Source of the DNA: Haplodiscus bocki
Lineage: Eukaryota
DNA: 64,000 nt
Assembly: GCA_965655095.1 (NCBI GenBank)
Contig: OZ296658.1
Coordinates: 75,020,001-75,084,000 of the forward strand
Direction of reading: 5' to 3'
Shown here: positions 8,315 to 45,500 of the stretch, piece after piece
How positions within the stretch are numbered: position 1 is the stretch's first letter
Layout: the number at the start of each line of letters is the position of its first letter
Position numbers and translations under genes: made by a program
The notes under the pieces: model-generated
What the model was told of the DNA's origin: nothing
Seen by the model: only the letters and a program-made list of their open reading frames with translations
Database searches by the model: none

Positions 8315-8394
8315 CTGATCTAGAGTGACTCTTCAGAAGACCGTTCTTTCTCAACCGCGTGAACTGCTTGCAGGTTTTCAAAACCAATCTCTCC

Positions 8395-8426
8395 TTTCGC
8401 AATCGACCGCAAGGTGGTTGCTGAAA
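8395..8426 (+). other. Conserved GNRA-capped stem-loop about 80 nt downstream of the ORF2 stop
   Basis: TTTCGCAATCGACC-GCAA-GGTGGTTGCTGAAA. The core is identical in L2 (~24189), L3 (~38917) and L4 (~55763). Function unknown. Confidence 0.4.
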
Positions 8427-9967: not shown

Positions 9968-9999
9968 ACCGGTGAAAATCACCAGGTGGCGGTCACTGG
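9901..9999 (+). other. Junction J1 (L1/S1): GC-rich hairpin cluster with invariant 18-mer; candidate terminus or origin
   Basis: AGGGGCCCCT palindrome, GGGG-CAAAAA-CCCC hairpin, TGACCACCCAGTGGAGGC, then GGTGA-AAA-TCACC hairpin. Equivalent 18-mers end at 11015, 25749, 40490, 41534, 42581 and 57320. Confidence 0.7.
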
Positions 10000-11015
10000 T
10001 TATGCCATTCTGACAATCGAACAAATTTGCTAGTCTTTTCTTTCAACACAGTAATGATTTGTGCAAATGCAGTTTTTATATATTGAAATTTGCATGTGAA
10101 ATCTTCACCGACATGGATGAGACATCGAAGATGAAGCTTGCAAACACTTTGGCCCCGTTGTTCCTCCGTGTCGCTTCGCTAATCTACGAAACAACGGGGC
10201 GAGGCAATAAACTTTTTGGCAATTGTTGTGAACTTTCACACAGAAATGCCTCAAAATAAATGATTTTTTTTTTCGAAGAATAACTTCTACTCCAAATTTT
10301 ACCCGGAGTTGAAGGATGTTTTGCTCTAAAGCAGTTTCCGAAAAGAAATTCGATCACAAAAACATCAGAAACGAATTCTACAATCAAAACCGAGTTTTTG
10401 GAAAAAAATTATTTTTTTTTCTCGAAAAGTTCGTCATAACCGTCATTTCTTTCGGCAAAATGGCCAAAAATTTTCTATCGTCGAAAAATTATCTTTCAAG
10501 TTATGGAGTCAATTTCATACTGCAGCCACTCCAGAGCGCAAGCGATGTACTTCAATGTGGGAGCTATGACAAAATGATCGATTTTCGGCACTTTTTCCCA
10601 ATTTTGATGCGTCATATCTCCACACTTATGACGAGTTGGTGGGAAATTTTTTGAATGTGTGTAGCTCTTAGTTATTCTGCTTCACACGAAAAGTTTTGGC
10701 CAAATGCTTGTGGTTAACTGCAGGGCTGTTGGAGAAAAACTGCAAAATGAGGGCAAAAAACAGAATCATCCCGTCATAATTCCCCAACTAATTTGGCTAG
10801 AATGATCTAACTTGCACCATTGTTCATGGAATTGTAAACTATGCCTGCATGCAAAGTTTCATCGAAATCGTATGGGTGGGAGCTGAGATCGCAAATTTCC
10901 TATACCGTATATGCGTATTTGTTATTTCTTATATTTTAACGCGAGGCAAAGGGGCCCCTCCCCCGCCTCGCTAGGACGTATGACGGGCGCAATCCCTTGA
11001 CCACCCAGTGGAGGC
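9968..11015 (+). mobile_element. Short non-coding module S1 (putative non-autonomous derivative, 1048 bp)
   Basis: Bounded by two junction 18-mers. Consists of a ~450 bp unique part plus the terminal block. Nearly identical to S3. Confidence 0.7.
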
Positions 11016-23097: not shown

Positions 23098-24108
23098 ATG
23101 ACAACTCAAGTCAACACCTCCCAAGTAACAGCTACATTTTTTTTGCGTCGAAGCGAAAATACGTTCGTCAGAGGTATCGTTCTAGTTATTAAGAAAAATG
23201 ACAAACCTTTGCAGTTGTTTAGACCGCAGAATATCAAAAACAAGAGAGGTGCCCTCGATACCAGCTATGATCGATTAGTCATACTAGGCGAGATCAGTTC
23301 GAAAGAATGCTTTGCTGTGATTGCGGAGTCTACACAGAAAAGCTATTTTTTGTTCGGGGACACTCTGTTAACAGTAGGGTCAATTGTGGACGTCAAAGAA
23401 CCTGTGTTCTCCAACTCTTTTCGCGGCAATGATCGCAGTAATCCCATTTTCCATGTCTTTCTTCCTTTGGAAGTCGTGATTAACAATATTCCATTGTTGC
23501 CAATTCCCATAGATCTCCATTCATCAACGACAGCAATGTTTCACTTTTGCTTGCCAAACAGACCCCTCACCTTCTTACAAGCAAGTGCTGTGGCTCCAAC
23601 TTGCTCAGGCTTCATGTGTGACAGACGAGAAAATCGAATTGACTCTGTATGCCCCTGTATACAGAAATCTCCTGTTTCCGCTTGGGTAATGTGCGCCCGA
23701 ATTATCAGTCGTGACATCGAAAATGAAGACGAAGACTCCCTCACGGGAGAAATATTACACAGTCTTAACCTGACAAAAATGTTTTGCAGCGAAGCTATTA
23801 TTAGAACTTCATATGCATCAATCAATTCACAACAACTGCGGAATGCTGTTAACCAGGTGTCCCAATTTGTAAATGAGAATGGAGGGTGGCAGGTACGTGG
23901 ATTTTACAAAACTGGATCCACAGACGAAAATCTTGCACAAAACGTACAACGTGCCCGCATTTGCGAAATTACGCCTGCCGTTGAAGTGCCTTTTAACTTG
24001 AAGTACAACATTGTGCCATGCAACGCCAATATTGGCAATGAACCCTCAGCTTTGCAGCATGCGAATGCTAACGTCGGTGCTCCTAACAATCCGAACGACG
24101 TACGATAG
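23098..24108 (+). CDS. ORF2, 336 aa accessory protein with a Cys cluster (CSGFMCD...CPC); possible OB-fold/zinc ssDNA-binding protein
   Basis: Intact ATG-to-TAG ORF with the same length in L4 and homologous broken copies in L1 and L3. The fold assignment is inference only. Confidence 0.8.
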   Translation: MTTQVNTSQVTATFFLRRSENTFVRGIVLVIKKNDKPLQLFRPQNIKNKRGALDTSYDRLVILGEISSKECFAVIAESTQKSYFLFGDTLLTVGSIVDVKEPVFSNSFRGNDRSNPIFHVFLPLEVVINNIPLLPIPIDLHSSTTAMFHFCLPNRPLTFLQASAVAPTCSGFMCDRRENRIDSVCPCIQKSPVSAWVMCARIISRDIENEDEDSLTGEILHSLNLTKMFCSEAIIRTSYASINSQQLRNAVNQVSQFVNENGGWQVRGFYKTGSTDENLAQNVQRARICEITPAVEVPFNLKYNIVPCNANIGNEPSALQHANANVGAPNNPNDVR

Positions 24109-27100
24109 GTGATCTAGACCTATTCTTCAGAGGACCGTTCTTTCTCCACCGCGTGAACTGCTTGCAGGTTTTCAAAACCAACATCTCCTTTCGCAATCGA
24201 CCGCAAGGTGGTTGCTGAAAAAAACATGCACAAAGTAACAGGTTTCGGAAAAAAAAATTAATGTTGTCCTCGTTCTTTCATACCAAAGTTTGTTCTCCTG
24301 CTTTTTTCAATCTTTAAACCTATGCTTCTATTCTCTTGTTTATGATAAAGTTTAACTTTCCAGTACTTATCAGTACCTAAAGGTTAATTGTTGGTTTTTG
24401 TAGAACTGTGAACACTAATGTCAAATTAGTTGTTGTTGAACAATGGAAATTAGTTTGCAACTGCCGACGACTTCTCTCTGTAAACTTATGTCTTTCAGTA
24501 GCTTAGAACATTGTGCTAATTCGTGTTGCTTTTGAATGTGGATTGTTGATTCGTGTAGAAGTTGTGAACTTTTCATTTTATGCAATGAACTTCTTTCTTG
24601 TTATGTTAAACATTACTATCCGTTCATCACCGAACGTTTTGAACTTTGAAACGATGTCTTGCTCTTTTATCGGGCTCAGTGCACTCTCTCAGTTTGTTGC
24701 TTGACGTTTGATACAGTGAACGCTTTGTAAAACAGGGAAAAGGAAAAGAAGCAGAAAGTGTTGTAATTTTCTCCAACAGAAGAATGGGAACAAACTTTTA
24801 TACGAAATTTTAGAGAAGTTTTATTCTGAAGTCTATACAGGTTCATTTGCTTCATTTAGGTTGTTTTCACAAAGTAACAGCTGGGAACCTACTGCCTACA
24901 AATTGACAACAATGGTGCGAAACTTTTTGAGAAAGTTAAAACACTTTCGCGGGTGAAATTTTGATTCGTTCGGAAAAAAATTCTGTTTTCGTTCCCAGAA
25001 ACTCATCAAACTTGAATTTGTTTGTTAAAGGAACAGCTGCTTTCAAAACATAGCAAGCTAAATTTTCCTGCCGACGTTCGCTATGCGCTTGTTTAAGTGT
25101 CATAATCAAATTCTACGGCAAATTTTGATTTTTTGTGATTTTTATTTTTTTTTCGAAAAATTCGTCATAACCGTCATTTGTTTCGGCACTTTGGCCAAAA
25201 ATTTTTTATCGTCAAAAAATTATCTTTCAAGTTATGGAGTCAATTTCACAATGGAGCCGCTCCAGAGCGCAAACTATGTACTTCAATGTGGGAGCTATGA
25301 CGAAATGATCGATTTTCGGCATTTTTTTCCAACTTTGATCCGTCATACCTCCACACCTATGACGAGTTGGCAGAAAATTTTTCGCATGCGTATAGGTCAC
25401 AGTTTATGTGCTTCACACAAAAAGTTTCGGCCAAATGCATGTGGTTACTTGCAAGGCTGTCGATTAAAAACTGCAAAAAAGGGCCAAAAAACAGAATCAT
25501 CCCGTCATAATTCCTCAACCATTTTTGCTAGAATGATCTAACCCGCACCATTGTTCTTAGAATTGTAAAGTATGCCTGCATACAAAGTTTGAACCAAATC
25601 GTATGGGTGGGAGCTGAGATCGCTATTTCTACACCCCCGTTTCCACAGATGTAAAACACTAACTACTAAAACGGCTCGGCAAAGGGGCCCCTCCCCCGCC
25701 TCGCAAAGGCCTGATATGGGGCAAAAACCCCTGACCACCCAGTGGAGGCGACGGTAAAAATTACCAGAAGGCGGGATTCTTTGCATCCAATTTTTTTTGC
25801 TGCATCATTTCTGGTGATTGGTTCTTTTTTCTAAAGGGTTGTTTTTATAAAAGGAAACTGTTGTTTTTTTATTTACGATACCTTACTCCAGGCTGAAGAT
25901 TAGCTCACACGACGCGGTACAACTGATACATGGATACATGGACAGTTTGTCTCACACCGTAAGATTGGGTTTTTTCCGCAAAACCTATAGTTTTCTTGAC
26001 TTTTTTAAAAGTTGACAACAGCAGCAATGAAGGATGGCAAACATACTTTCTGCTCGATTTTTATACAAACTCAGGTCAAAACGGCACTAATGTAACAAAT
26101 TTTTAAAGTTGTCAGCTGCAGAAATAATATTTAACTTCACCCACTTACCCGTGACCGACTTACATAACAATGAACGTTTTCATTGGATATCCTTCCCATT
26201 TATTTAATCCGGAATTTTTCAAAGAAATCATTGGCTTGCAGAATGGGTGATGTACCTGAAGCATTTCTTGGTGGTCCTCCATACCGTTTTTTGTTCTTCA
26301 GAGAAACAATATTGGTGTTGCGGGCTCGTCCACGTCATTTGGCCTTTTTCATACATGAAAAAGTACAGTTAGGTGTTCTGTACCAGAGAAATTCATGAAC
26401 AAAAAGTTCCGCGCCAAAACATTTCATCCATTATGTAACTATTTTATTCATGCACCGTTCAAAACGCATTAAATACGTTTAATGCGTCCAGAAGCAGAAC
26501 AAAAGGATTAATGGTAACTAGCCATTTTCATCATTGACTTGAGACACTTGTCTCCATTGTCTCCATCAAGTCATCGTCAGCCATAGATTATGACAAGTTA
26601 AAGGCCACTTTGATGACGTATCAGTGCTGATAGTAGACTAAATGTGTGTCTTTCTTTTGTCAAGTGGTGAAATTCGTGCTTTGATTTTCCTGATTTTCAG
26701 CTTTTACCAACAATAAACGTGGTTAGTGAAAGGAATCGAAACAGTTTCTGAAGGTATCATGCTCAGTTAAAACGATGCTTCTTTACTATTGATGACTTTC
26801 AAGAGTGGTTTCGATTTTAAGAATTTTTTTCTTCTACAGACCGAACCAGAACTGTCGCGTTTCACAAACGTTTTTGCGTGAGGTTCTTGGAAGAGGCTAT
26901 TCGGTCGGTTCCGACGCATACATAACGGAGTTTTACACTTATTCCAAAATAACTTTTGAATTTTGTGTAAAAAATTACTTGTTGTCAGATAAAATGATCA
27001 GCGAACGAGCATGTTATGGATACGTTTTATTCTTGTGAAGTTTTGTCGAGGTTTCTTTTTGGATATTGCGTTTTTATATCAAATCGTAAATTGTTTCACG

Positions 27101-29169
27101 TGAACTCGGCATCGCCAATTTCCAATCCCGCATTTGAACCCTTTCATGTAGATACTTTTTCGTATGTGATAGAAACGTATGAACTGTTCATCCTGTAATT
27201 CCTGACTCACTGAAGTCTCAACTGATTTTGGTGAACAATTTTTGGCTTGTGTCGATAAATTCGGCGCATTAACTTTGGTAAATTACTTTGCTAACGTTTT
27301 CCTGGGAGAAGAGTGCTGTGTAACGCTTGTCAGAATCGCTGGCTGACTACTAATACTTTTCAATAATTTCTAAAACTAAAAGGGGGACTACGCTGTTATC
27401 ATCGTACATGAAATGTTGAAATAGTTAATGGCGCATTGGAGACGTGGGAAATTGAAAAGTAAACAAAATAATCGTTACTTTTAATGTATCCCCTTGGTTG
27501 CCAACGTTGACTGGCATTAGAGGAACAATTTCTACAGGTTCAACAAAGTTGAGCATATTATTGGTTTTGCTTAGGAGGAGAACTTGCTTTCATTTACTTT
27601 TTAACCGCCTGCGGCCTAAACACCGGTCACGTAACATTTAGTGTTCGCCATTCGTTAGCTGGTGAGTTTGGTGTCAGTCATGCGGTAAACTGAAAACAAG
27701 GGATAATTTCTTAGACAAACAGACCGTTTCCGCTGTCAGTGCGGGAATGAAAGATTACGTAACGTTCTTGTTTCACGCTTTTCAAATAAGGGTTTTATCT
27801 CTTTTCAACTGAGCAGTAAAACGCTGTAACATGATATCCTACTTTGTTCAACAGTTCAATGTCAGTTTAATTTAAGCTAATTTTTCATGTTCATTGCTTT
27901 AGATATATTTGCTGTTCTTATCGCCAACTACAGGACGGTTAAGTTTCCAGCAGTAAAAAGCAAGCTTCAGATTGATTGCCATTGTAGTCAGCTTGAAGTA
28001 AAGGCAGATAATTGTGTAGTCTGTGTCATTATAGGAAAATTCTTCATGATTTTCGGGTGCTCATTAAAAATAACGTTCGAATATATGAAAGGCAGATTAA
28101 ACTTGAGTATTTTTTTGTTTTTGGTTGTGCTGTGCTGGCAGGGAAGAAAATGATGCAATTTTGCGTGTATCTGCAAAAGTTTATTTTCGTTTTTGTTTGT
28201 GTTTGCCAATTGTCACCATATTGAGTAAATTAATGACAAAAAGTGTGTTTCTCGTGCAGTTGTGTGAATGGTCTCTGTTTCATTCCACGTCAAAAGGGGC
28301 AAGTAATTGGCTGGTACCAATTATCGCAAGTGAAAGTTTTTGGGGAATTTTGACATACGCCTCCTTCCTGTAGGAGTTTGCTGGTTTTTGTTGCAGACCC
28401 AAACTTGCGACCTGAAGTCAAAGATTTTATATCGGCTTCCCTTTCTTGAAGGGTTAATTTGGAAAGTAGTTTATTGCTTCTTGTAAATGTTTAGAGACTT
28501 TCATTGTGTTTTCTATGTGCTTTGCCTGTAGGACTTTTGCTATTTGATGTCGGCACGAGTGAAGCACTATATGTAAAAGGCATCTTCCCAAAGACTTGGT
28601 TTCGCTCAGAGGCCTTCGCAAAACCAAGGCGCTTCTGTTTTTCATTATTCAATTCGCAATGGAAACTGTAACCGTTATGGAAACAGTCCTTTCCTAAAAA
28701 CTTCAAAAAGGTTTGAAATGCAGAAAGGAATAAATGTCACATTTTGTATGTCGAATTCATAGCAGCCTCTGGAGCTCTATTTGTCGCAAATAGGTCATTG
28801 GCGACTTCAATTGTTTGGGGTCTGTAATTTTTTTTTGTGTTTCAAATAGGTATGGTAAATTTTGACATCCTGCTTCCTTTTTTTGTGCAATCAAACCTGC
28901 AACCAAAAAGCAAAACATGAAGCGTCGCCGTTGTACTTCGTGTGGACAATTTGCTGTTGCAAGCCATGTTTGCTTGAAGGACATTGATCGAGAACTTCAA
29001 TCTGATGAGCCGCTGGGCATCTTATACAAAATTCCCGACGTTTCAATCTCCGTTTCACCAGTTGCAAGAAGTGAAACTCTGAACTGTCTCTCAACTTTAG
29101 GTCTAAGTGATTTTTTAGTCTCTCCAGACGTTTCGATCGCAAATGACAGTATCATTTGTACTTTCCGTC

Positions 29170-29595
29170 CGGCGCGTGTAACTGCGATTCTTGGCGATGG
29201 TAATTGTCTTTTCTCATCCTTAGCAGTTGCTCTCGGTTTGTCACAGGATTGTAGTTCAATTCTACGGAATATAATTGTTAGCAACATGATGTTCATCAAC
29301 TTCCCTCCAAACAGCTTACAAACCACAATTTACTCCGCTGATTTTCCAAACCAATACCGTGTTTTGCTTTGTACGTCGGTTCAAGAGTACCTCAGTTTGT
29401 CGAAAATGGAAAAAAATGGAGTCTTCGGAACATGCGTTGAAATATACGCGTTTTGTCAGATTTTCCAAGTGGACGTATATTTATACCATGTTCCTCTGAA
29501 ATCCTGGTTGGTTTATGAATTCTCTCTGAGCACGAATCGACGTGGAATTTTCATTCAGCAAACCTGGAATGCAAAACACTTCGAAGTAATCAGTC
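29170..29595 (+). other. OTU-family cysteine protease domain within ORF1
   Basis: ILGDGNCLFSSLA (Cys box, Cys codon 29205), FGTCVEIYAF, and HFEVI (His codon 29577). Confidence 0.88.
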
Positions 29596-32579
29596 AGTTG
29601 GTTTCAGTCGCAAATGAAGAAAACGTTGCAGGTTCACAAAGAATTTCGTGTCTTGGTTCCAACGCAATGCATTTGTCTTTGTCAATTTTGGGAGAAGATA
29701 ATAAATCTTTCAGGTACCCAGAAAACACAACAGGGGTGCCACCAGCGAAAAAAGCAAAACACACTGCGGATCCATCCACCTGGAAGACACGCCTTGAAAC
29801 TCACGTCACACGCACTCCAAGTCAAAAATTCTGTAACGCAAAGTCTGATCAAAATTTTCCGATGCTACCGTTGTCAGAAAACGCTACCAAACCTGTTGTG
29901 GACAAAGAAATACCCAAAATCAAGGATCTGTACACTAACACTGCTACGGCTTTACACAGTGATGCGACGACTGAACAAACGACAGATGGTAAATCTAAGT
30001 CTGCTGACGGAGAGTTTTGCGGCAAATGCTTGCGACAATCCACGCTGCAATATCCGTTAAAGCTTTCTCAGAAACAAAAATCAGATTTTAAAAACAGAAT
30101 GTTTGGTAACCGAATCAAGGACGCTTTTCCCATATTATGCAATCAATGTCTAATTTACTGCACTTCCGAACGCATCGAGTGGAGTCACGCATGGCCGTCT
30201 GTTTTTTTCACGCTTTTGAGTGATGAAAAAATGCCCAAGGAGCAGCAGTTGAATGTTTTAACGTTGTTATCTTGGGAACTGAGACAGCAATGGATGGGTT
30301 GCTTGGAAAAATTTACTCCATGTGTCCAACAATTTCTCAATGGGAAACAAATCAATGGGAAATGTGTCGTTGACGGAACCGCTCGTTTGCATTATTTCCA
30401 GAAACTGATCAAAACTCTTCTACAAGAACAAATTGCAGTTGCTTTGGATAAAGAACCTTACCCGAACGTTCGGTGCCCATTTGGTTGCTGGTGTTTCATT
30501 GAAGAATCCGGTTTCATCACTGCGAAACACTTTTTGAATCTATTCGACCCAGCTTTCACATCTTTTGGAGCTTCTAGTCATTTGCATGTTAGAGGAATTA
30601 GGTCAGATTTCTTGGTTCCAAAGTCATCATTGCGGAAGTTTCTAATTGCAACAACTGTGCGTGTAGACGAAGAAGAAGGATTGGTTGTTCACGCTTGCCC
30701 CATGCACTCGAAGGGGTCGTCTGTGCAATACCTTCATCCTCCATCGCATCCTGTCCTGTCAAGAACTGCGTTAATTCACGATGAACGTTTGAGTATGGTG
30801 GCACCAACAATTTCGTGGATAACAAACATTAAAGCAAATTTCGCCAGTCATACCTACCAGTTATTGAAAAGTGTTGGTTCTTATAGTGGAATGAGTACAG
30901 TTCAGTTGCGGCGGCGAACGCGTTGGGACATCACCAGCGATATCTTGTACCACGCTGAAGGCCTCGCTTGCCGTTTTCGAGAAGATGTTAAAACGAAGAT
31001 TCGTGAATGGGTGAGAGAAGGTAAAATCGTTGAAGATGTAGCTTTGGGGATTCTTGACTATCCTGCACAGATTGAGAACATTTCAGACTGTTTGTTGCCT
31101 GCCCTTTCTACAGATTTGGAGACTTGTGTAGAATTAGCTAAATTTCTAGATAAAAATGATAAAGACTATTTAAACAACGTGGAAGCTTTGAGCTGTTATT
31201 CCTTCGCCCACGGAACCTGCGAGTATGGTTGTTCGCCCCCTCCTCTGAATTGTAGAGGCAGCAATGTTTTTTGGCTTGTACAAGCTGCACTGTGTCTGTC
31301 ACCGTTGATGTGTCGTTCTTTGGTGACATCAGGTAAGTATTCTGTGACCTTGAAGCCTTTGATATCTTTGCTGAGGAATGTCTTTATTACCTCAAAGGCA
31401 ATGAAAAAAACCAGCAATACCCTACTTCTACAGCGCTCGGAAGAAGCAATAAACACCTTGCTAGAGAAAAACCGAACTGAAGAGCAGTTAAAAGGTGTGA
31501 AGTACTGTTGTTGCCATCTCGCAGCACAATTTTTGGCAACTGTGTCTGAGAATTTTTGCCACATCCCCTTAACGAATCGAAAAAATATAACTTGTTATAC
31601 AAATGTGCAACTTCCCGTTGAAACAACTCACGCTATATTCACCACCAATTCTCCCAATAATTTGCGGAGCAAAAGAGAACCTCCGTTAAGGTTGGTTGTC
31701 AACGATATCGGCTATGAACTGATTGCAGTCGGAGCAAAGGACGGAGGCCCGGCCGCCGAGCCAAGGTTGATGGTTCGACATGCAGGTGACTTCCAAAAGT
31801 TCTGGCTTTTGGAGAAAAGCTGCAGATACGCTAGGAAGATGACAGAATCTAGAACTGAGGCTTTGAGTTCAGGTCTTCGTGGATGTTGGACGATAGCATT
31901 TTATGAGAAATCAAGAAATCTTGAATTAGCTGATTTGAAATGGAACTTTCTGAGCACTTTGACGGGTCAAGGCGTCTTCATCTGTGAATCTCATGACGTT
32001 CCTTTGACAAGAGACTTCAGAAAGAGCAGTTTTCGTTGTAGATGCACCCGTGCTTCTTTTTTGCGTTGCCCTTATTCCCAATGTAACAGTTGCGTATGCA
32101 AGCGTCACTTCAACGAAGGTCTACAGAGTCGGAATAGGCGTGTTCTTGTTGATCCAATGCCGATGTCGAAAAAGAGGGGAAATACGCAATTCTCACCTGT
32201 TAATTCAGAGTCGTCTACCATGCAGGTTGTATCAGAAACATCATCTATTGTAGAGTCAATCGAATCAAGCGAGCCTGATGCAGCAGGAATTGCCTTTGGT
32301 AGGGTGTCCAACAACAATTTTTCTGTTGTTGGGGATTTCTCTTTCGAAGTTGACAACCATGAACCTCTTGAAGACAGCATGAATGTATTGGCTAGTCTCC
32401 AAACTTGCCCTGATAAAAAAGCTCTTTTCATTGATCCACACCGAAAAGAAGATCTTTTCAAACTGCCACTTCACATTCTGCTCAATTCTCAATGCAACCT
32501 TTTGTACCGGCATAAAGGGAGTCCAATCAGTTTGTCGCTGAAAGAAAAACGTTTTTTAGAAAACATTGCAGCAACTTCC

Positions 32580-34010
32580 ACGACAGCGCTGCCTCTAATT
32601 CAACCAGAAGCTCTTTTGTTTCCATCAATTTTTTGGTGTCAAGCTAACAACGGTAGTTTTCATGGAGCAATACCAGCCGCGCTTTACAACAACTCCAAGT
32701 ACAACAGACAACTGGGTTTTGCTGGTTTGGAAGACATGCTTCGTACGAGAATCAAAGATGGTTCGCTGTTGACATCATGCAATCCAACTTATTTGCAGTA
32801 TGTGTTTGACAGCCTTTTGAACATGCAGCTTCACAAAACTGATGTTAGATTGGTTTTAAATCGGGGATGGCAGGAAGTGAGTTCCGGCCCTACAAATTGT
32901 TCATTTGTTTCAACGCAAACATTCAAGTTTGACTGTGCGGAAAGTCGTAAAAATGTCTGTGAACTCGCAGCTTTAATTCGAGATAAAAATCCAACGTACT
33001 TTTTGACATATACTTGCAGCCAGTCGACCCATCCTGGCGTTAGAAAAATTTTTCAGGCGCTCTATGAAATGTACCCACCAGAAACTACAAAAAAAGAACT
33101 GCTCTCTGCGGCCATTCAAGCAGAATTGATGCCGATGCTCAGGTGTTGGTATAGAGCTTCACAATACGTAATGGAGTGGGTGAAAAAATCTCCAGAAAGA
33201 CCACTGGGACCGGTATCCCACATTTGGATGCGGTATGAATGGCAGGAGGAGACAGCTGGGTTCCCTCATTTGCATGTGATACTTTGTACTCCAGAAGACA
33301 AGTTTTCTAATGAGGTGAGATCTCGAGTTTGCTGTTGAAAAGAAACATTTTTGGGTGCATTAGAAAGCAGTTGCCCTCAATTAACGAAAGACGAAAGGTT
33401 GCATCTCGGTGAGTTATTTCAAAAGTATCAAATTCATAACTGTACCAAAGGGCGTCAGCGATGCCATAAAAAAACAGATCGTCTCAATCAGCCAATTTGT
33501 CGTGTGCCAAGATATCCACCATCGAATGCATTTTCGTTCAAAGAAGTTCCCATTAACTTCTCTTCTGAAACAATGGACTTGTTACAAGCCATGGACTTAG
33601 CAGACATTGACGTTAACACGTTGTTGCCGAAGGTCAAAAACCCTCTAATTGCCGGGAAGCATCACTATCCCACTGTGTCTAACGAGCATTTCTCGCCAAC
33701 CAATGCAGCTTTGTTTGCACTGACACAATCAAGCACTAACGTTCAAATTTGCGACGATTACATGGCACCCCGTTACGTTGTGAAGTATGCAGCGGGCATT
33801 GAATCTCGAGCAGCAGCCACAATTGTTGCAGGTCAGACAGAGAACAGTGTGAAGTTTCTGACAGAACCGATAGAACATGAGAAGATAGCAGGTGTTCGAG
33901 CTTGTTTGAAAAATTTGCGCCAGGAAGAGAAACGACAATCAGTAAAAGGTCGTATTGTCAGTATTACTGAATGTCTTTGGTGGTGCTTACAACTTCCTTA
34001 CGTCTGCACA
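32580..34010 (+). other. Helitron-type HUH Rep endonuclease domain within ORF1
   Basis: Motif I YFLTYTC (32997). Motif II RYEWQEETAGFPHLHVIL (His codons 33267 and 33273). Helitron-like HNC..C..C cluster. Motif III YVAKY/YVVKY (33774-33788). Confidence 0.88.
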
Positions 34011-35119
34011 AATGTTGACTTTGTACATGTGCCTACAGTTCCCAAAGAATATCGTTCAGGAATTGTAATTGAGAAACGTTTTCACAAGTCTCCGAATTTC
34101 AGTGCCACTTTCACTGATGGAGTACGTGTGCGGAAAGAATTGTTGGAACTCCCAAAACTTCGACAATTTACAAAAAGTCAAACCCTCCTCCTAGCAGATG
34201 TTGAAAACAGTTTCATTTCTCCTGACAAGGTAACTGTTTTTGGACTGAGGCCGGCGGAACTTTTGTTCGTATCCCAGTTAAAAGACTACTTCAGCTAGTT
34301 TGTGCGGTGGAAACCCAGAAGAACAAACTGCCTTAGCAATCACGAGAAGTTCTTGAAAAAAAGTTTACGTAAAAGCTGCTGGGTTGATGCACTTGGATAT
34401 TTGGTTAAACTGCGCCCATCTGCTGTTAACTCTTTCGTAAGTCTCTGTCAAGAAAAGTTTGGTGAAGAACGGAATCAGTTCCTGAAACGCGAAATGAGGA
34501 AACACATTGTTCCCATTCTTGAAAACAAGAACAGTTCTCAGTTCGTTGCTCATTGGAAAAACTTGTCAGAAGAAGAGGCCGTTGTTGTTCTCAGCAACAC
34601 TCTACCGAATAACCCAACAAAATTTTTACTTCATCTGTTACTGACCGTCGGGAAACTTGACACTGAGTTGGACATCTTGAACGTCCAAAGTTTCGAAGAA
34701 GCTTTCATAAAAGCGGGTATTTTGCTAAACTCAACCGTCACTGATGGCGAAGTGAAAGAAATAGCTAAAATGTATTTGCTGGAACAGCTTCGCTTCACTC
34801 CAGGGTCATCTAAATTGATTGACACTTACTTGGTAATGGCCCATAGTGTCATATCGGAGGCACTGTTAAAAAATAATCTATTTTTTGCTGCTGCTTTACC
34901 ACCTGTTCTGGACAAAAGTGTCCTGGAGGAATGCGAAGAAACAGTCACAATTCAACTGGCTATGGAAAAGTGTAAAATGATAGCTTTCCTTCAGACATGT
35001 CAGACTGAAATACCTGCAGAGCAAACGATGATCGACGCCACTTTCAATACTCCAGTGCCTTGGAAGCCACTTTTACAGAAGAGCTCGGATCAAAGTAAAA
35101 ACTCATTTTTAGAGCAGCG

Positions 35120-36440
35120 TCAAGTTTTGGACGAACTCATTAATTCAATAGACATGTATAAACGAGGACATTGCACTTTCATAAGACATCAGATTGTTTT
35201 CGGTCCACCGGGAAGCGGCAAAACTTTTGTGATGCTGAAGTCCCTTGCTTACGCCTTATGCCAAGGATTGCATTGTGTGGTGACATCCATAGCAGCCGAA
35301 AGATCTGCTGCTTTAGCTGGAAAACATCTAAATGCTTTGATACCATTTCCAGTTGAAAAATGTTGCTCTGCAGAATCACTTTCGAAGAAAGCTCTGTCCA
35401 ATTTACAACGATCTCCTATCAAAAGCCGAGTTTTACAGTACTTAGACGTAATTTTCGTTGAAGAACTTTCGATGATATCTAGCGAGCTTTGGGCAGCGAC
35501 AGATCATGTTTTGCAAGTTGTCACGGCAAATTATGTTCCTTTCGGCGGAAAACTCGTTGTCGCAACTGGTGACTTCTTTCAACTTCCCCCGCCCTCTGGA
35601 TCTTACTTGATGAGTTCCTCTTTTCCCTTAACAACCTTTGCTTTCCACAATTTGAAAAATTTCGTCCGAATGCGGAACAAGAACGGCCAGGAACTGTTAT
35701 CATTGTTATCAGCAACGCCTGAAACAGATGCCAATGCAGAAAGAATTTGAAAAATTATGGAAAAAGATTGCAATTTTGTACAATCGTGGAACGACGTGCC
35801 GAACGACAGAATTCGAATTTTTGCTACTAGACAAGCGGAACGAAAAGCAACCGAGAATAAAATCAATGAAGTTAAATGCAGCAGAACACAATTCTTTGAA
35901 AGTGCGTCCATCGACGAAATGTGCGTTTCGAGCACCGACAACTGGAGTGAGGCGACTGCAACAGCGTCGAAGTTCCTGAACAAAAAGTGCCTTGAGCCCC
36001 AATCACTTTTTCTATACCCCGGTGCTATTATGAGATTAACTGTCAACAAACCATCCATATCAGCATATCAAGGTCAACTTTGCGTCCTCCTGACTTTGGA
36101 TACCATTGAAAATGGTACCCTAACAGTTGCTCTTGCTCCAGCTGGTTGCAGAAAGATCCCGCCACTCTCTGTGATCAGAAACAGTTGGAGGTGTGTTGTT
36201 ATTGGCAAGGAAACCGGTGTAGCCTTCCGATTAAACCATAAAACAGTGTGCAGGAGGATACAGTATCCGTTAAAGCTTTTTGTTGCGTCCACCATTCACA
36301 AGACCATGGGCGAAACTCTGCCGATGGTGGCAACGCAAATAGTGGGGTCACGAGATTTTGCTTTGTGGCTTCCTGAGCAGTTGTATGTGGTTATGAGCAG
36401 GGTAAGGAGTTTGAACCATGTGACTTTTGTGGGCACGAAG
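35120..36440 (+). other. PIF1-family (SF1B) helicase domain within ORF1
   Basis: GPPGSGKT (35202), IFVEELSMIS, PFGGKLVVATGDFFQLPP, LKNFVR, QYPLKLFVASTIHKTMG and QLYVVMSRVRSL. Confidence 0.93.
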
Positions 36441-36605
36441 GAGGAGAATAGAAGAGCAGTTTTAGACTTAGTCCGCAAAAAATCACAATGGGCTGAGCTG
36501 ACTAATGAAATTCTGACAAAAAGTTCTGCGCGCCATCCCACAGTTTATCATGCCAAAGCATCGCCTTTTCCACCATCAACTCGTGACCTACCTACCCAAA
36601 ACTTG

Positions 36606-36840
36606 GGTTTCTGTTACTTGCTGCAGAGTGTCCCACAAAGTCAGCTGTTGTACATTGGCTCCACTATGTCATTGGAGCGTCGTCTGAGGGAACACAATTC
36701 TGGATTAGGTTCCAAGTTCACAAATTTTACAAATCGGTTGCCCTGGAAAGTTTGTGCCTATGTAACTGGGTTCAATTTAACCAATGCGTCTCATAGAGTC
36801 CGCGTATTTGAGAAAGAATGGCTGGATGCAGCATCGAACT
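36606..36840 (+). other. SLX1-like GIY-YIG endonuclease domain at the ORF1 C-terminus
   Basis: GFCYLLQS...LYIGST...RRLREHNSG...RLPW...GF...FEKEW matches the SLX1 pattern CYLLxS/YVGST/RRLRQHNG/RPW/GF/FExAW. Confidence 0.88.
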
Positions 36841-37826
36841 ACGTTAATCTCACAAAGAAAAATGTATCACTCTTCACAGCCATCAATTTAGGTGAAGACA
36901 TTGCAAAAACTTGGCCGCACAAAGAAGACGGTTTAAAACTTATTGTATGTAGTGGTGAACCCACTGCCTGTTTAAAGCCATGGTGATCGCAATATCCATT
37001 CTGACAAGACTGTTGAAACCATTTTCGGTTGTGCACAATGTTTCTGCGTACGCGTTGGATCCCAACTGCTTCGACTGCATAGTGAAGCGTTGACAGAGTT
37101 CCGTTCCTATATTCTGTATAAATTTGCATCGACTGCACAGTGTTGCGAATTTCAGCATAGGACTACTGACGAAAAATTTTTGGCTCGACTGACTGCTGCG
37201 ACTGTAGATTGTCGCATTTTGAAATGTCAGCTCGTATTGCTCCTTCAGTGCCCTTGATAATATGCACCAGATGAACTATTTAGAATTTTTGTTCAGCATT
37301 TTTGATTAGTTGAATTTTCTTGCTTAGTGTAGCTTTGAGTACGTATTAGACTTCAGTTGTGGAACATGTGCAATGAAAATATATTTTATTATCCTTTACT
37401 TTCTACAAGTTTTGTGGACAGAAAAAAAACCGATGTAATAATGGTGTATTCGAATGCATTGCTCCCCTTTTTTTTCTATGGCCTTAAGTGTTACTGATCG
37501 ACAAAGCGTGATGCGTTGAACCGTAAGATAACTGTAATTGTAACATAACATTTCTGTGAATTAAACTCAGTGATGAAGAAGATTTGAGAACTCTGAATAA
37601 TTGATGAACTTGTCATGCTTTTTTTGAAAAACAGGTTGCTTTACTTGAAGCAATAGCACTATTTCACTGTATTAAATGCTTGAAACCGAAAATACTTGCC
37701 TGTTGACTTTAATGAACCTTAAAGGAAAATGCGTTCACAGAATCTTTAAAAAAAGTAGAAAGCATGGTTTTGAATATTCCAACTGTTCAGTTCTCAGGCA
37801 GCTTCAACCACGTTTGATTTCAGACT

Positions 37827-38836: not shown

Positions 38837-40490
38837 CTGATCTAGAGTGACTCTTCAGAAGACCGTTCTTTCTCAACCGCGTGAACTGCTTGCAGGTTTT
38901 CAAAACCAATCTCTCCTTTCGCAATCGACCGCAAGGTGGTTGCTGAAAAAAACATGCACAAAGTAACAAGTTTCGCGAAAAAAAGTCAACTGATAATGTT
39001 GTCCTCGTTCTTTCATACCAAAGTTTGTTCTCCTGCTTTTTTTCAATCTTGAAACCTATGCTTCAATTTTCTTGTTTATGATAAAGTTTAACTTTCCAGT
39101 ACTTATCAGTACCGAAATGTTAATTGTTGGTTTTTGTAGAACTGTAAACACTAATGTCAAATTAGTTGTTGTTGAACAATGGAAATTAGTTTGCAGCTGC
39201 CGACGACTTGTCTCTGTAAACTTTTGTTTTTCAGTAGTTTAGAACATTGTGCTAATTCGTGCTGCTTTTCAATGTGGTTTGTTGATTCGTGTACAAGTTT
39301 TGAACTTTTCATATTATGCAATGAACTTCTTTCTTGTTTTGTTAAACTTTACTATCCGTTCATCACCGAACGTTTTGAACTTTGAAAAAATGTCTTGTTC
39401 TTCTATCGGGCTCAGTGCACACTCTCAGTTTGTTGCTTGACGTTTGATACAGTGAACGCTTTGTAAAACAGGGAAAAGGAATAAAACTAGAAAGTGTTGT
39501 AATTTTCTCCAACGTAAGAATGGGAACAAACTTTCATACGAAATTTTAGAGAAGTTTTTTCTGAAGTCTATACATGTTCATTTGCTTCAATTAGGTTGTT
39601 TTCACAAAGTAACAGCTGGGAACCTACTGCCTGCAAATTGGCAACACTGGTGCGAAACTTTTTGAGAAAGTTAAAACCCTTTCGCGGGTCAAATTTTGAA
39701 AGTATCCGTTGGGGAAAAAATTTCAGTTTTTCTTCCCAGAAACTCATCAACCTTGAAGTTGTTTGTTAAAGGAACAGCTGCTTCCACAAAATGGCCAGCC
39801 AAAATTTCTTGCCGACGTTCGCAGTGCGCCTCTTCAAGTGTCATAATCAAATTATACGGCAAATTTTAATTTTTTTTGATTTTTTTGTTTTTTTTTTCGA
39901 AAAATTCGTCATAACCGTCATTTGTTTCGGCACTTTGGCCAAAATTTTTTTATCGTCAAAAAATTATCTTTCAAGTTATGGAGTCAATTTCACAATGGAG
40001 CCGCTCCAGAACGCAAGCTATGTGCATCAATGTGGGAGATATGACGAAATGATCGATTTTCGGCATTTTTTTTCAAATTCGTTCCGTCATATCTCCACAC
40101 TTATGACGATTTGACAGAAAATTTTTCGCATGCGTAAAGGCCACAGTTAATGTGCTTCACACAAGAAGTTTCGACCAAATGCGTATGGATACTGCTGGAG
40201 GTGGCAGAAAAAAACCGCAAAATTTTGCCAAAAATAGGAATCATTCCGTCATAAGTCCTTAAACAATTGACCTAGAATGATCTAACCGGCACCATTGTTC
40301 TTAGAATTGTAAAGTATGCCTGCATACAAAGTTTGAACCAAATCGTATGGGTGGGAGCTGATATCGCTATTTCTACACCCCCGTTTCCACAGATGTAAAA
40401 CACTAACTAATACGGCTCGGCAAAGGGGCCCCTCCCCCGCCTCGCAAAGGCCTGATATGGGGCAAAAACCCCTGACCACCCAGTGGAGGC

Positions 40491-41534
40491 ACCGGTGAAA
40501 ATCACCAGGTGGCGGTCACTGGACAAGCACCTCTGAAATATGATAGTTTACTGATAGTCTTTTCTTCGAACACAGTAATGAGTTTTGCAAATGCCTGTTT
40601 AATACATTGAAATTGAGCCTGTGAAATCTTTATTGAAATCGACAGGACATCGAGGACGAAGCTTGCAAAAAGTTCGGCCCCGTTGTTTCTCCGTGTCGCT
40701 TCGCTAATCTACGAAACAACGGGGCGGGGCAAATAACAATTTGAATTTCGAATTTTTTTTTCATTTTTGGGCCAAATTATGATTGTTTTTCCAGAAAATT
40801 TCAATACCTCAACCCACAAAAAAGGTTCAAATTTAAAACAACTATGCAGTAAGAAAAGTTTGGGGGAAAATGGACAAAAAAATTGCCAGATATGAATTCT
40901 ACAATCAAAACTGAGGTTTTGGAAAATTTTAATTTTTTTTTCGAAAATTTCGTCATAACCGTCATTTCTTTCGGCAAAGTGGCCGAAAATTTTTCATCTT
41001 CGGAAAATTGCCTTTCAAGTTATGGAGTCGATTTCATACTGGAGCCACTCCAGAGTGCAAACTATGCACTTCAATATGGGAGCTATGACGAAATGGTCGA
41101 TTTTCGGCATTTTTTTCCAAATTTCATCCGTCATATCTCCACACCTATGACGAGTTGGTAGAAACTTTTTTGCATGCGTGTAGCCCTTAGATATTCTGCT
41201 TCACATGAAAAATTTCGGCCAAATGCATGTGGTTATTTGCAGGGCTGTCGGTAAAAAACTGCAAAATGAGGCCAAAAAACAGAATCATCCAGTCATAATT
41301 CTTCAACCGTTTTTGCTAGAATGATCTAACTTGCACCATTGTTCTTAGAATTGAAAGTTATGTCCGCATGCAAAGTTTGATCCAAATCGTATGGGTGGGA
41401 GCTGAGATCGCTATTTCTACACCCCCGTTTCCACAGATGTAAAACACTAACTAATAGGGCTCGGCAAAGAGGCCCCTCCCCCGCCTCGCAAAGGCCTGAT
41501 ATGGGGCAAAAACCCCTGACCACCCAGTGGAGGC
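40491..41534 (+). mobile_element. Short module S2 (divergent subfamily, 1044 bp)
   Basis: Bounded by junction 18-mers. The unique part is visibly diverged from S1/S3 but keeps the first ~32 nt and the internal inverted repeat. Confidence 0.7.
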
Positions 41535-42581
41535 ACCGGTGAAAATCACCAGGTGGCGGTCACTGGTTATGCCATTCTGACAATCGAACAAATTTGCTAG
41601 TCTTTTCTTTCAACACAGTAATGATTTGTGCAAATGCAGTTTTTATATATTGAAATTTGCATGTGAAATCTTCACCGACATGGATGAGACATCGAAGATG
41701 AAGCTTGCAAACACTTTGGCCCCGTTGTTCCTCCGTGTCGCTTCGCTAATCTACGAAACAACGGGGCGAGGCAATAAACTTTTTGGCAATTGTTGTGAAC
41801 TTTCACACAGAAATGCCTCAAAATAAATGATTTTTTTTTCGAAGAATAACTTCTACTCCAAATTTTACCCGGAGTTGAAGGATGTTTTGCTCTAAAGCAG
41901 TTTCCGAAAAGAAATTCGATCACAAAAACATCAGAAACCAATTCTACAATCAAAACCGAGTTTTTGGAAAAAAAATATTTTTTTTTCTCGAAAAGTTCGT
42001 CATAACCGTCATTTCTTTCGGCAAAATGGCCAAAAATTTTCTATAGTCGAAAAATTATCTTTCAAGTTATGGAGTCAATTTCATACTGCAGCCACTCCAG
42101 AGCGCAAGCGATGTACTTCAATGTGGGAGCTATGACAAAATGATCGATTTTCGGCACTTTTTCCCAACTTTGATGCGTCATATCTCCACACTTATGACGA
42201 GTTGGTGGGAAATTTTTTGCATGTGTGTAGCTCTTAGTTATTCTGCTTCACACGAAAAGTTTTGGCCAAATGCTTGTGGTTAACTGCAGGGCTGTTGGAG
42301 AAAAACTGCAAAATGAGGGCAAAAAACAGAATCATCCCGTCATAATTCCCCAACTAATTTGGCTAGAATGATCTAACTTGCACCATTGTTCATGGAATTG
42401 TAAACTCTGCCTGCATGCAAAGTTTCATCGAAATCGTATGGGTGGGAGCTGAGATCGCAAATTCCCTATACCGTATGTGCGTATTTGTTATTTCTTATAT
42501 TTTAACGCGAGGCAAAGGGGCCCCTCCCCCGCCTCGCCAGGACGTATGACGGGCGCAATCCCTTGACCACCCAGTGGAGGC
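41535..42581 (+). mobile_element. Short module S3 (1047 bp, near-identical to S1)
   Basis: Bounded by junction 18-mers; same type-B end (GGACGTATGACGGGCGCAATCCCT) as S1. Confidence 0.7.
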
Positions 42582-45500
42582 GACGGTGAAAATTACCAGA
42601 AGGCGGGATTTTTTGCATCCATTTTTTGCTGCATCTATTATGGTGATGTGTTCTTTTTCCTATTCTAAAGGGTTGTTTTTATAAAAGGAAACTGTTGTTT
42701 TTTTTTATTTACAATATCTTACTCCAGGCTGAAGATTAGCTCACACGATGCGGATGCAACTGATACATGAATACACGGACAGTTTGTCTCACACCGTAAG
42801 ATTGGATTTTTTCCGCAAAACTTATAGTTTTCTTGACTTTCTTAAAGTTGACAACAGCAGCAATGAAGGATGGCAAACATATTTCTGGTCGATTTTTACC
42901 CAAACTCAGGTCAAAACGGCGGTAATGTAAGAATTTTTTACAGTTGTCAGCTGCAGAAACAATGAACTTCACCCACCTACCCGTGACCGACTTACATAAC
43001 AATGAACGTTTTCATTGGATATCCTTCCCATTTATTTAATCCGGAATTTTTCAAAGAAATCATTGGCTTGCAGAATGGGTGATGTAACTGAAGCATTTCT
43101 TGGTGGTCCTCCATACCGTCCTTTGTTCTTCAGAGAAACAATATTGGTGTTGTGGGCTCGTCCACGTCATTTGGCCTTTTTCATACATGAAAATTGATAG
43201 TTAGGTGTTCTGTACCAGAGAAATTCATGAAGAAAAAGTTCCGCGCCAAAACATTTCATCCATTATGTAACTATATTATTCATGCATCGTTCAAAACGCA
43301 TTAAATACGTTTAATGCTTCCAGAAATAAAACAAAATGATAAATGGTTACTAGCCATTTTTCATCATTGAATTGAGACACTTGTCTCCATTGTCTCCATC
43401 AAGTCATCGTCAGCCATAGCTTATGACAAGTTAAAGGGCACTTTGATGACGGATCAGTGCTGATAGTAGACTAAATGTGTGTCTTTCTTCTATCAAGTGG
43501 TGAAATTCGTACTTTGATTTTCCTGATTTTCAGCTTTTATCAACAAAAAACGTGGTTAGTGAAAGGAATCGAAACAGTTTCTGAAGGTAACATGCTCAGT
43601 TAAAACGATGCTTCTTTTCTATTGATGTCTTTCAAGAGTGGTTTCGATTTTAATAATTTGTTTCTTCTACAGACTGATCCAGATTTGTCGCGTTTTACAA
43701 ACGTTTTTGCCTGAGGTTCTTGGAAGAGGCTATTTGGTCGGTTCCGACGCACACATAACGGAGTTTTACACTTATTCCAAAATAACTTTTGAATTTTGTG
43801 TAAAAAATTACGTGTTGTCAGAAAAAATGATCATCGAACGAGCATGTTATGGATACGTTTTATTCTTCTGAAGTTTTGTCGGGGTTTCTTTGTGGATATT
43901 GCGTTTTTATATCAAATCATAAATTGTTTCACGTGAACTCGGCATTGCCAATTTCCAATCCCGCATTTGAACCCTTTCATGTAGATACTTTTCGTATGTG
44001 ATCGAAACGTATGAACTGTTCATCCTGTAATTCCTGACTCACTGAGGTCTCAACCGACTTTGGTGAACAATTTTTGGTTTGTGTCGATAAATTCGGCGCA
44101 TTAACTTTGGTAAATTACTTTGCTAACGTTTTCCTGGGAGAAGAATGCTGTGTAACGCTTGTCAGAATCGCTGGCTGACTACTAATACTCTTCATTAATT
44201 TCCAAAACTAAAAGGGGGACTACGCTGTTATCATCGTACAAGAATTGTTGAAATAGTTGATGGCGCATTAGAGACGTAGGAAATTGAAAAGTAAACAAAA
44301 TAATAGTTACTTTTAATGTATCCCATTGGTTGCCAACGTTGACTGGCATTAGAGGAACAATTTCAACAGGCTCGACAAAGTTGAGCTTATTATTGGTTTT
44401 GCTTAGGAGGAAAACTTGCTTTCACTTACTTTTTAACCGTCTTCGGCCTAAACGCTGGTCACGTAACATTTGGTGTTCGCCATTCGTCAGCTGGTGAGTT
44501 TGGTGTCAGTCATGCGGCAAACTGAAAACAAGGGATAATTTCTTAGACATACAGACCGTTTCCGCTGTCAGTGCGGGAATGAAAGATTACGTAACTTTCT
44601 TGTTTCACGCATTTGAAATAAGGGTTTTATATCTTTTCAACTGAGCAGTAAAACGCTGTAACATGATGTCCTATTTTGTTCAACAGTGCAATGCCAGTTT
44701 AATTTAAGCTAATTTTTCATGTTTATTGCTTTCGACATATTTACTGTTCTTATCGCCACCTACAGAACGGTTAAGTTTCCTGCAGTAAAAAGCAAGCTTC
44801 AGATTGATTGCCATTGTAGTCAGCTTGAAGTAAAGGCAGATAATTGTCTAGTCTGTGTCAATATAGGAAAATTCTTCATGATTCTCGGGTGCTCATTAAA
44901 AATAACTTTCGAATATATAAAATCCAGAATAAACTTGAGTAATTTTTCGTTTTTGGTTGTGCTGTGCTGGCAGGGAAGAAAATGATGCAACTTTACGTGT
45001 ATCTGCAAAAGTTTATTTTCGTTTTTGTTTCTGTTTACCAATTCTCACCTTATTGAGTAAATTAATGACAAAAAGTTTGTTTCTCGTGCAGTTGTGTGAA
45101 TGCTCTCTCTTTCATTCCACGTCAAAAGGGGGAAGTAATTGGCTGGTACTGATTATCGCAAGTGAAAGTTTTCGGGGAATTTTGACATACGCCTCCTTCC
45201 TGTAGGAGTTTGCTGGTTTTTGTGGCAGACCAAAACTTGCGACCTGAAGTCAGAAAGTTTTTATAACGGCTTCTCTTTCTTGAAAAGTTAATTTGGAAAG
45301 TATTTTTTTGCTTCTTGTAAATGTTTAGAGACTTTCCTTGTATTTTCAGTGTGCTTTGCCTGTAGGACTTTTGCTATTTGATGTCGGCACGAGTGAAGCA
45401 CTATATGTGAAAGGCATCTTCCCAAAGCCTTGGTTTCGCTCAGAGGCCTTCGCAAAACCAAGGCGCTTCTGTTTTTCATTCTTCAAGTCGCAATGGAAAC

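Follow-up and report, generated by a model that had tools for sequence, protein, structure and literature searches.

In a stretch of 64,000 nucleotides from Haplodiscus bocki (contig OZ296658.1 of assembly GCA_965655095.1, positions 75,020,001 to 75,084,000; "the window" hereafter means this whole stretch), we found a head-to-tail array in which a single long frame occurs five times, always on the + strand. We consider it very likely that this frame represents the transposase polyprotein of a Helitron-like element (HLE), and that the element belongs to an old, widespread branch in which an SLX1-type GIY-YIG nuclease lacking the RING domain that binds SLX4 was ancestrally fused, in frame, to the C terminus of the transposase. 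The evidence for this reading comes from the domain content of the frame, the type of its terminal nuclease, and the conservation and co-inheritance of the fusion across divergent relatives.

A preliminary description made from the sequence alone had presented the copy at positions 28917 to 36986 (copy 3) as one intronless frame of 2689 codons that carries OTU, HUH/Y2 Rep, PIF1, and GIY-YIG motifs and recurs across the array. The length of the frame and its recurrence held, and all four domains were present by Pfam scores and by catalytic motifs, but the frame is not open, as it contains three in-frame stops. The domains of copy 3 follow one another in the order OTU, a Cys/His-rich region of approximately 1000 amino acids, Rep, PIF1-like helicase, and GIY-YIG (Table 1). 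The OTU domain contains a Cys motif (GDGNCLF, amino acids 93 to 99) and a His motif (KHFE, amino acids 219 to 224), both of which are kept in an intact relative, P0174. In Rep, we identified motif 1 (TYFLTYTC), the HUH motif (FPHLHVIL, amino acids 1449 to 1456; 33261 to 33284), and the two-tyrosine motif (RYVVKYAAG, amino acids 1619 to 1627; 33771 to 33797), with the H-x-H and Y-x3-Y residues being invariant in 16 to 19 divergent relatives. The Pfam model for this domain (Helitron_like_N, PF14214) matched amino acids 1347 to 1456 of copy 3 at 28.4 bits, slightly below its cut-off of 28.9, and matched intact relatives at 30.5 to 33.4 bits, above the cut-off. The helicase has Walker A (GPPGSGKT, 35202 to 35225), Walker B, GDFFQLPP, and motif V (ASTIHKTMG, 36285 to 36311) and matches both PIF1 and the Helraiser helicase in the PDB. 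A Rep with the HUH motif and two tyrosines, followed downstream in the same protein by a PIF1-like helicase, places the frame among the HLEs.

The C terminus matched the GIY-YIG profile of Pfam, as the preliminary description had anticipated, and its assignment to the SLX1 type was supported by profile searches of the PDB and by structural comparison. With the last 411 amino acids as a phmmer query, the best PDB matches were SLX1 proteins from three fungi (5e-7 to 3e-4), followed by bacterial UPF0213 proteins. When a profile built from 25 divergent family domains was searched against the PDB, it matched only SLX1 (4e-17 to 3e-13), At-HIGLE, and UPF0213, with no match to a further GIY-YIG class at E<=0.01. 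An AlphaFold2 model of the window's nuclease domain, built on an alignment of these 25 family sequences, had a pLDDT of 91 and a pTM of 0.84. The top 11 matches of this model in a Foldseek search of the PDB were all SLX1 or HIGLE, with TM-scores of 0.61 to 0.72 over 115 to 136 columns; I-TevI appeared only at E~0.6. By sequence profile and modelled fold, the nuclease is of the SLX1 type, with the same GIY-YIG fold as SLX1 (PDB 4XLG, 7CQ2, and 6SEH) and plant HIGLE (7WME), including the helical extension of SLX1.

The transposon nuclease also has the catalytic Tyr, Tyr, Arg, His-Asn, and Glu residues in common with SLX1 and HIGLE. In the window, these lie in the motifs CYLL, YIGST, RRLREHN, and FEKEW, and the GIY Tyr, the YIG Tyr-Gly, the Arg, the His-Asn, and the Glu were invariant in all 25 family sequences. 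Identity to SLX1 is only 22 to 30% over the structural alignment, indicating that the domain was not copied recently from a host gene. Unlike SLX1, the transposon nuclease is tethered to a transposase and has no C-terminal RING/PHD domain, the site for the SLX4 partner. The protein ends approximately 55 residues past the catalytic Glu, which leaves the SLX4-binding domain absent; this short tail is modelled as two helices and a strand, and neither the sequence nor the model contained a zinc-finger motif after the Glu. Another group of mobile elements with a C-terminal GIY-YIG endonuclease is the Penelope-like retroelements, in which it accompanies a reverse transcriptase and is thought to nick the target. 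Penelope-like elements resemble the family in the position of this domain, but they are retroelements with a different enzyme core, and the family domain matched only the SLX1/HIGLE/UPF0213 branch in the PDB profile search.

To place the fusion beyond the window, the nuclease-domain profile was searched against 1.84 billion cluster representatives (clusters at 50% identity), which gave 1943 matches at E<=1e-3, of which 194 reached E<=1e-10. Among the best 150, many corresponded to the C termini of proteins of 2450 to 2920 residues. Sixteen of these long representatives, only 22 to 45% identical to each other, align over their full length; their HxH, Y-x3-Y, GxGKT, and GIY-YIG catalytic residues are invariant, and Pfam detected GIY-YIG in all 16 and PIF1 in 14. 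One relative, P0174, is intact, has exactly 2689 residues, and is collinear with the window frame from OTU to GIY-YIG, the identity being 31% over the N-terminal half and 49% over the C-terminal half. A search with the Rep-helicase core (RepHel) of a second intact relative (P0021) yielded 17 near-complete relatives (2246 to 2853 amino acids), P0174 among them, every one of which has GIY-YIG and none of which has the APE domain (PF03372, Exo_endo_phos). More broadly, Pfam detected no APE domain in pieces of the window frame or in any of the relatives scanned. Within one ENA assembly, different contigs held relatives with PIF1 and GIY-YIG at 97, 80, 61, 60, 52, and 34% identity. That uninterrupted ORFs occur in many independent contigs speaks against the nuclease being a neighbouring gene fused to the frame through faulty assembly or annotation.

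We compared trees of RepHel and of GIY-YIG for 30 proteins and found 17 of 27 splits in common, relative to a random mean of 0.2 and a random maximum of 3. The two distance matrices were likewise correlated (Mantel r = 0.77), with none of 2000 permutations reaching as high a value. This congruence fits one ancient acquisition of the nuclease followed by co-inheritance and does not fit repeated capture. The preliminary description had proposed that an SLX1-like domain occupies the APE position and could define a distinct lineage. The occurrence of the domain in frame after the helicase in dozens of divergent full-length proteins, with no APE in the relatives scanned, bears out the first proposal, and the wide distribution of the fusion and the co-evolution of GIY-YIG with RepHel lend support to the second.

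The nuclease has also been maintained at the level of its coding sequence. With a 78%-identical subfamily (in L005) as the reference, the ratio of non-synonymous to synonymous substitution rates (dN/dS) was 0.19 for the whole frame, 0.10 for both Rep and the helicase, 0.15 for OTU, and 0.21 for GIY-YIG. Judged by these ratios, the nuclease domain has been under purifying selection.

The hosts of the family are eukaryotic. Family sequence was present in runs labelled "coral metagenome", and in the ESM Atlas one cluster with both PIF1 and GIY-YIG includes diatoms, another with GIY-YIG alone includes chordates, and the Rep clusters are predominantly cnidarian, although we take the ESM Atlas taxa as leads only. 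Two relatives carry the automatic JGI name "predicted GIY-YIG superfamily endonuclease". In a distant lineage (P0166, at L004:2118-11423, and P0119), GIY-YIG is not terminal and is followed by a Ulp1 protease (Peptidase_C48); OTU was not detected in these two proteins, so that the cysteine protease, here Ulp1, is at the other end of the protein.

In organization, the family is like Helentrons (Poulter 2003; PMC4067079) in its giant protein combining Rep (HUH and two tyrosines), a PIF1-like helicase, and a fused C-terminal nuclease, and like them again in its OTU protease, small companion open reading frame (ORF), non-autonomous partners, tandem repeats, and 3' hairpins. Helentrons are described as carrying an AP endonuclease fused to the C terminus of RepHel together with OTU and RPA genes, and as having subterminal inverted repeats of 12 to 15 bp, a 3' palindrome, and TT insertion (PMC4067079). 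In contrast to the Helentron nuclease, which is an APE (Exo_endo_phos), that of the family is an SLX1-type GIY-YIG; and unlike Helentrons, the family yielded no detectable DUF6570, no RGSPHxH in Rep motif 2, and no subterminal inverted repeats. Since APE is the defining feature of Helentrons and was searched for without being found, we file the family as Helitron-like and not as Helentron sensu stricto.

Our comparison with other HLEs is based on Pfam scores, Rep motifs, and alignments to a typical protein of the Helentron/Helitron2 clade (HLE2; P0203) and to Helraiser. DUF6570, which lies upstream of Rep, has been reported by HELIANO to mark the whole HLE2 clade (PMC11417382). HLE2 elements also have terminal or subterminal inverted repeats of 12 to 16 bp and insert between T and T. 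In P0203, DUF6570 was matched at 132 bits and Helitron_like_N at 118 bits, whereas DUF6570 was not detected in the intact relatives P0174, P0021, and P0170 even at E<=10. Rep motif 2 is RGSPHxH in Helentrons and RGLPHxH in Helitrons (PMC4067079); that of the family, E-x-Q-x4-G-(N/F)-(L/F)-P-H-x-H, fits neither signature, and it is preceded by an aromatic-x-R triplet that resembles the Helentron signature. The family profile aligned to P0203 by hhalign only in the helicase. Similarly, Helraiser (PDB 7LCC) matched the family in the helicase at 78 bits, and HMMER gave no detectable alignment of the Helraiser Rep domain to that of the family. When we searched with a RepHel profile of 19 sequences, the weakest family member scored 181 bits and the first protein with DUF6570 scored 50 bits. 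Overall, searches with a single protein and with this RepHel profile recovered almost only the family itself and two weak DUF6570 proteins that aligned in the helicase alone.

Relative to Helraiser and other canonical Helitrons (HLE1), the family has the same Rep-helicase architecture and, by inference, the same rolling-circle chemistry. Helraiser has neither an extra nuclease nor OTU, whereas the family has both, and the ends of the elements in the window are not the 5'-TC...CTRR-3' ends of canonical Helitrons. The only report of a comparable fusion that we found in the searchable literature is that of HelenSM92 of the moss Sphagnum magellanicum, to which HELIANO (2024) gave one sentence on a "captured" GIY-YIG and which it classed as HLE2 (PMC11417382). 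HelenSM92, which we could compare by its description only, combines RepHel and GIY-YIG as the window family does; its domain is described as captured, in one moss family, whereas the fusion in the window family is ancient, widespread, and of the SLX1 type.

We compared the five copies in the window codon by codon. The other copies are 95.5 to 97.8% identical to copy 3, and the array repeats with a period of 14.7 to 16.8 kb that depends on how many 1.05-kb non-coding modules lie between the copies. Each of the three stops of copy 3 corresponds to a sense codon in one or more of the other copies, and the stops are shared in a mosaic pattern, that at codon 1474 being common to copies 2 and 3 and that at codon 1794 to copies 3 and 4. 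A variant genetic code was considered for the in-frame stops and was ruled out by the mixture of TGA and TAG and by the sense codons in other copies. Copy 1 is open from 2945 to 6460, from the C terminus of Rep to the GIY-YIG domain, and copy 5 is the only copy without lesions, none being found in its 1171 visible codons. As all complete copies and the partial copy 1 contain lesions, the array consists of pseudogenes of what was formerly a single 2689-codon ORF.

A public ENA assembly contig, L007, contains at positions 2987 to 11056 a copy of the whole frame that is 98.8% identical to copy 3, without an indel, and is allelic to copy 3 or else a paralogue of very recent origin. This copy has sense codons at all three copy 3 stops and two stops of its own (codons 1380 and 1443). 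The sense codons at the copy 3 stops indicate that the common ancestor was an intact 2689-codon ORF and that decay is recent. Between array copies, dN/dS was 0.31 to 0.41 (copies 2 and 3, for example, differ by 117 synonymous and 130 non-synonymous changes), and the non-coding spacers were 92% identical compared with 96.7% for the frame. The low ratios and the greater divergence of the spacers imply that most divergence between copies arose under coding constraint, which is unlike a simple in-place duplication of one dead copy. Stops common to neighbouring copies suggest exchange between neighbours. The pattern of the array is consistent with active elements having inserted time and again at the ends of resident copies, followed by exchange among neighbouring copies.

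Downstream of the polyprotein, the element carries a companion gene, ORF2, with counterparts at the same position in three other subfamilies (L006:22354-23379, L001:21125-22108, and L003:16258-17298). Across the four subfamilies, ORF2 is 336 to 346 amino acids long at 22 to 44% identity and contains a CxGxxCD...CxC motif that is invariant; Pfam gave no match to it. Each unit then ends in a GC-rich 3'-terminal block that is 67 to 84% conserved even between subfamilies whose non-coding DNA is otherwise unalignable and that always finishes in ...CCAGRWGGCGG. We compared block ends from the window (25672 to 25776) with the matching ends in L001, L003, and L005. Approximately 35 nt upstream of the exact 3' end, ...GGCGG, lies a 17-nt core, TGACCACCCAGTGGAGG, containing a CCAC-CCA-GTGG mini-hairpin. 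This core is nearly invariant, being the same in 9 of 10 copies of the block taken from the window and from three other loci, with one L001 copy differing at three positions, and it is a candidate recognition or nick site for Rep. Small hairpins elsewhere in the block show compensatory changes (GGTAA/TTACC versus GGTGA/TCACC, and GGGG/CCCC versus GGAC/GTC).

The 1.05-kb modules are non-coding mini-elements stacked between the autonomous copies, at 0 to 2 per unit in the window (1 to 3 blocks per unit). Their number in the near-identical contig L007 differs from that in the window and is probably higher. Directly after ...GGCGG comes either the 5' region of an autonomous element or a 415-bp sequence leading into another block. 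This exact abutment of autonomous and mini-elements at ...GGCGG| was found in the window and at three other loci, and the junction types recur in L001 and L005. Autonomous and mini-elements differ in their 5' ends and have in common the 3' block with its covarying hairpins. In the array, autonomous and non-autonomous units are thus stacked head to tail and have a common 3' end. Insertion of the elements into a pre-existing satellite with a 1.05-kb monomer was rejected as an explanation, since the layout is block-(spacer-block)n, without a spacer ahead of the first block.

In the interval of approximately 1000 residues between OTU and Rep (amino acids ~200 to 1250; 29500 to 32660), we found no Pfam match. 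Cys/His motifs in this interval are kept family-wide, including CPxG, CxxH...HxP, and a C-rich cluster before Rep. The interval may bind zinc and recognise DNA, or it may correspond to a highly divergent DUF6570.

Table 1. Features of the array, in positions of the window
Feature	Position	Strand	Remarks
Copy 1 (partial, 5' part outside window)	1-6463	+	One stop, one 1-bp insertion
Copy 2	14180-22248	+	4 stops, 8-bp insertion, 9-bp deletion
Copy 3 polyprotein frame, pseudogene	28917-36986	+	2689 codons and terminal TGA, 3 in-frame stops
Copy 4	45751-53818	+	2 stops, two 1-bp deletions
Copy 5 (partial, 3' part outside window)	60486-64000	+	First 1171 codons
OTU cysteine-protease domain (copy 3)	29193-29588	+	Pfam PF02338, 26.7 bits (cut-off 23.3), amino acids 93-191
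Rep (HUH-Y2) nuclease core (copy 3)	32955-33797	+	Pfam PF14214
PIF1-like SF1B helicase (copy 3)	35112-36311	+	Pfam PF05970, 50 bits
SLX1-type GIY-YIG nuclease domain, C-terminal (copy 3)	36588-36983	+	Pfam PF01541, 43.2 bits
In-frame stop TGA, codon 1474	33336-33338	+	Also in copy 2; TCA in copies 1, 4, and L007
In-frame stop TAG, codon 1794	34296-34298	+	Also in copy 4; TGG in copies 1, 2, and L007
In-frame stop TGA, codon 2278	35748-35750	+	Copy 3 alone; TGG in other copies and L007
ORF2, 336-aa companion gene	23098-24108	+	Downstream of polyprotein
3'-terminal block, ~635 bp, GC-rich	25138-25776	+	Ends exactly ...GGCGG, where next element starts
Two 1.05-kb non-coding mini-elements, head-to-tail	40516-42606	+	~415-bp 5' part and terminal block each
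Mini-element/block regions	9360-11126, 25138-25776, 39883-42606, 56714-57350	

Considering that SLX1 is a structure-specific endonuclease, cutting flaps, forks, stem-loops or hairpins, and junctions, and that the domain sits where Helentrons have their AP endonuclease, we suggest a role for the nuclease in transposition. Judging from HUH transposases and Helraiser, Rep would nick the ends of the element and become covalently attached, and the PIF1-like helicase would unwind or peel off the transposon strand. The tethered SLX1-like nuclease could then make an extra, structure-dependent cut of a kind that Rep cannot make. Most probably the nuclease would nick the target or else cut a hairpin or branch, perhaps the hairpin-rich 3' end of a resident copy, and its cut would either provide a 3'-OH for second-strand synthesis or resolve a branched intermediate. 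Nicking of targets and resolution of branched intermediates had also been suggested in the preliminary description. Cutting at resident 3' ends would account for the end-to-end stacking of copies. Without a RING domain, the nuclease would act independently of SLX4 and be positioned by the helicase instead, and OTU may serve as an accessory deubiquitinase, as in Helentrons. This specific role, a structure-dependent extra cut made as a target nick or at a hairpin or branch, is drawn by analogy, and we offer it as a tentative proposal that is at present rather less probable than its absence.

Several observations weigh against our interpretation. Helraiser, a canonical Helitron, transposes without any extra nuclease. 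A subclade of long (2361 to 2603 amino acids), apparently intact proteins (P0189, P0190, P0192, P0194, and P0196) has kept the domain and lost its YIG, Arg, and His-Asn residues, so that by its sequence the domain of this subclade looks like a pseudo-nuclease, and catalysis must be dispensable at least there. Comparison of the 5' start with the 3' block gave no inverted match above the shuffled expectation and hence no terminal inverted repeats, and the predicted DNA folding energy of the 3' end was no better than that of shuffled sequence (z = 0.29). Finally, neither host flanks nor empty sites are visible within the window.

The family could instead be an ordinary subgroup nested in HLE2 in which APE was swapped for GIY-YIG, and which is perhaps already catalogued. 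The placement of the GIY-YIG-bearing HelenSM92 in HLE2 by HELIANO (PMC11417382) speaks for such nesting, as do the HLE2-like content of the elements (OTU at the N terminus, a nuclease at the C terminus, internal or tandem repeats in the non-autonomous partners, and hairpins at the 3' end) and the aromatic-x-R triplet before Rep motif 2. We nevertheless regard nesting as unlikely, though a serious contender, considering the failure to detect DUF6570 in three intact relatives when P0203 scores so highly, a Rep motif 2 other than RGSPHxH, Helitron_like_N scores of 28 to 33 bits as against 118 in P0203, alignment to P0203 in the helicase only, the fall in profile score from the weakest family member to the first DUF6570 protein, and the lack of any subterminal inverted repeats in our searches. 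It is far less probable that the GIY-YIG domain is a passively captured fragment of host SLX1 with no part in transposition. HLEs often capture fragments of host genes, HELIANO called the moss case a capture (PMC11417382), and one subclade has a catalytically dead domain. A passive passenger, however, would not be expected to remain in frame at the same position with invariant catalytic residues in relatives down to ~22-30% identity, to have a tree congruent with that of RepHel, or to have the low dN/dS found here, and the distance of the domain from SLX1 over the structural alignment likewise argues against capture of a host fragment.

The array itself might have formed by segmental or unequal-crossover duplication in situ, or as a single rolling-circle concatemer, and then decayed, with no end-targeted stacking. 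Mosaic sharing of the stops at codons 1474 and 1794 is typical of exchange within an array, the window and L007 contain unequal numbers of mini-elements, and failed termination is given as a known source of Helitron concatemer arrays (PMC11934779). These points make such an origin a possibility worth keeping, but one that we judge to be improbable, as it is at odds with the dN/dS between copies, with spacers that are more diverged than the frame, and with the abutment of autonomous and non-autonomous units with different 5' ends on the same terminal base. Our most far-reaching proposal is also the one in which we place less confidence than in the extra cut itself: the family would be a third major lineage of eukaryotic rolling-circle transposons beside HLE1 and HLE2, defined by its ancestral nuclease fusion, in which the SLX1-type nuclease recognises the hairpin-rich 3' ends of resident copies and thereby directs the insertion of autonomous and mini-elements exactly there and the growth of arrays.

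In the searchable full-text literature (Repbase, Dfam, and subscription reviews being outside the scope of the search), the combination of Helitron or Helentron with GIY-YIG or SLX1 gave one relevant sentence only, that of HELIANO (PMC11417382). Due to this sentence on a GIY-YIG Helentron family, the architecture is not wholly unreported. The preliminary description did not count it among the standard Helitron classes, and the architecture is nearly undescribed. The family is real, widespread, and essentially undescribed, yet it falls within the frame of endonuclease-bearing HLEs.

Ever since the description of Helentrons, the purpose of the second nuclease found in some Helitron-like transposases has called for an explanation. 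In a large ancient family, the same position is taken by another nuclease, one whose biochemistry is well understood. This amounts to a natural domain swap, which suggests that the extra cut is a real mechanistic step and one that can be tested with defined branched substrates. The weak matches to standard Rep models suggest that annotation pipelines may miss or misclassify the family, members of which form arrays of several copies that extend over tens of kilobases of an animal genome.

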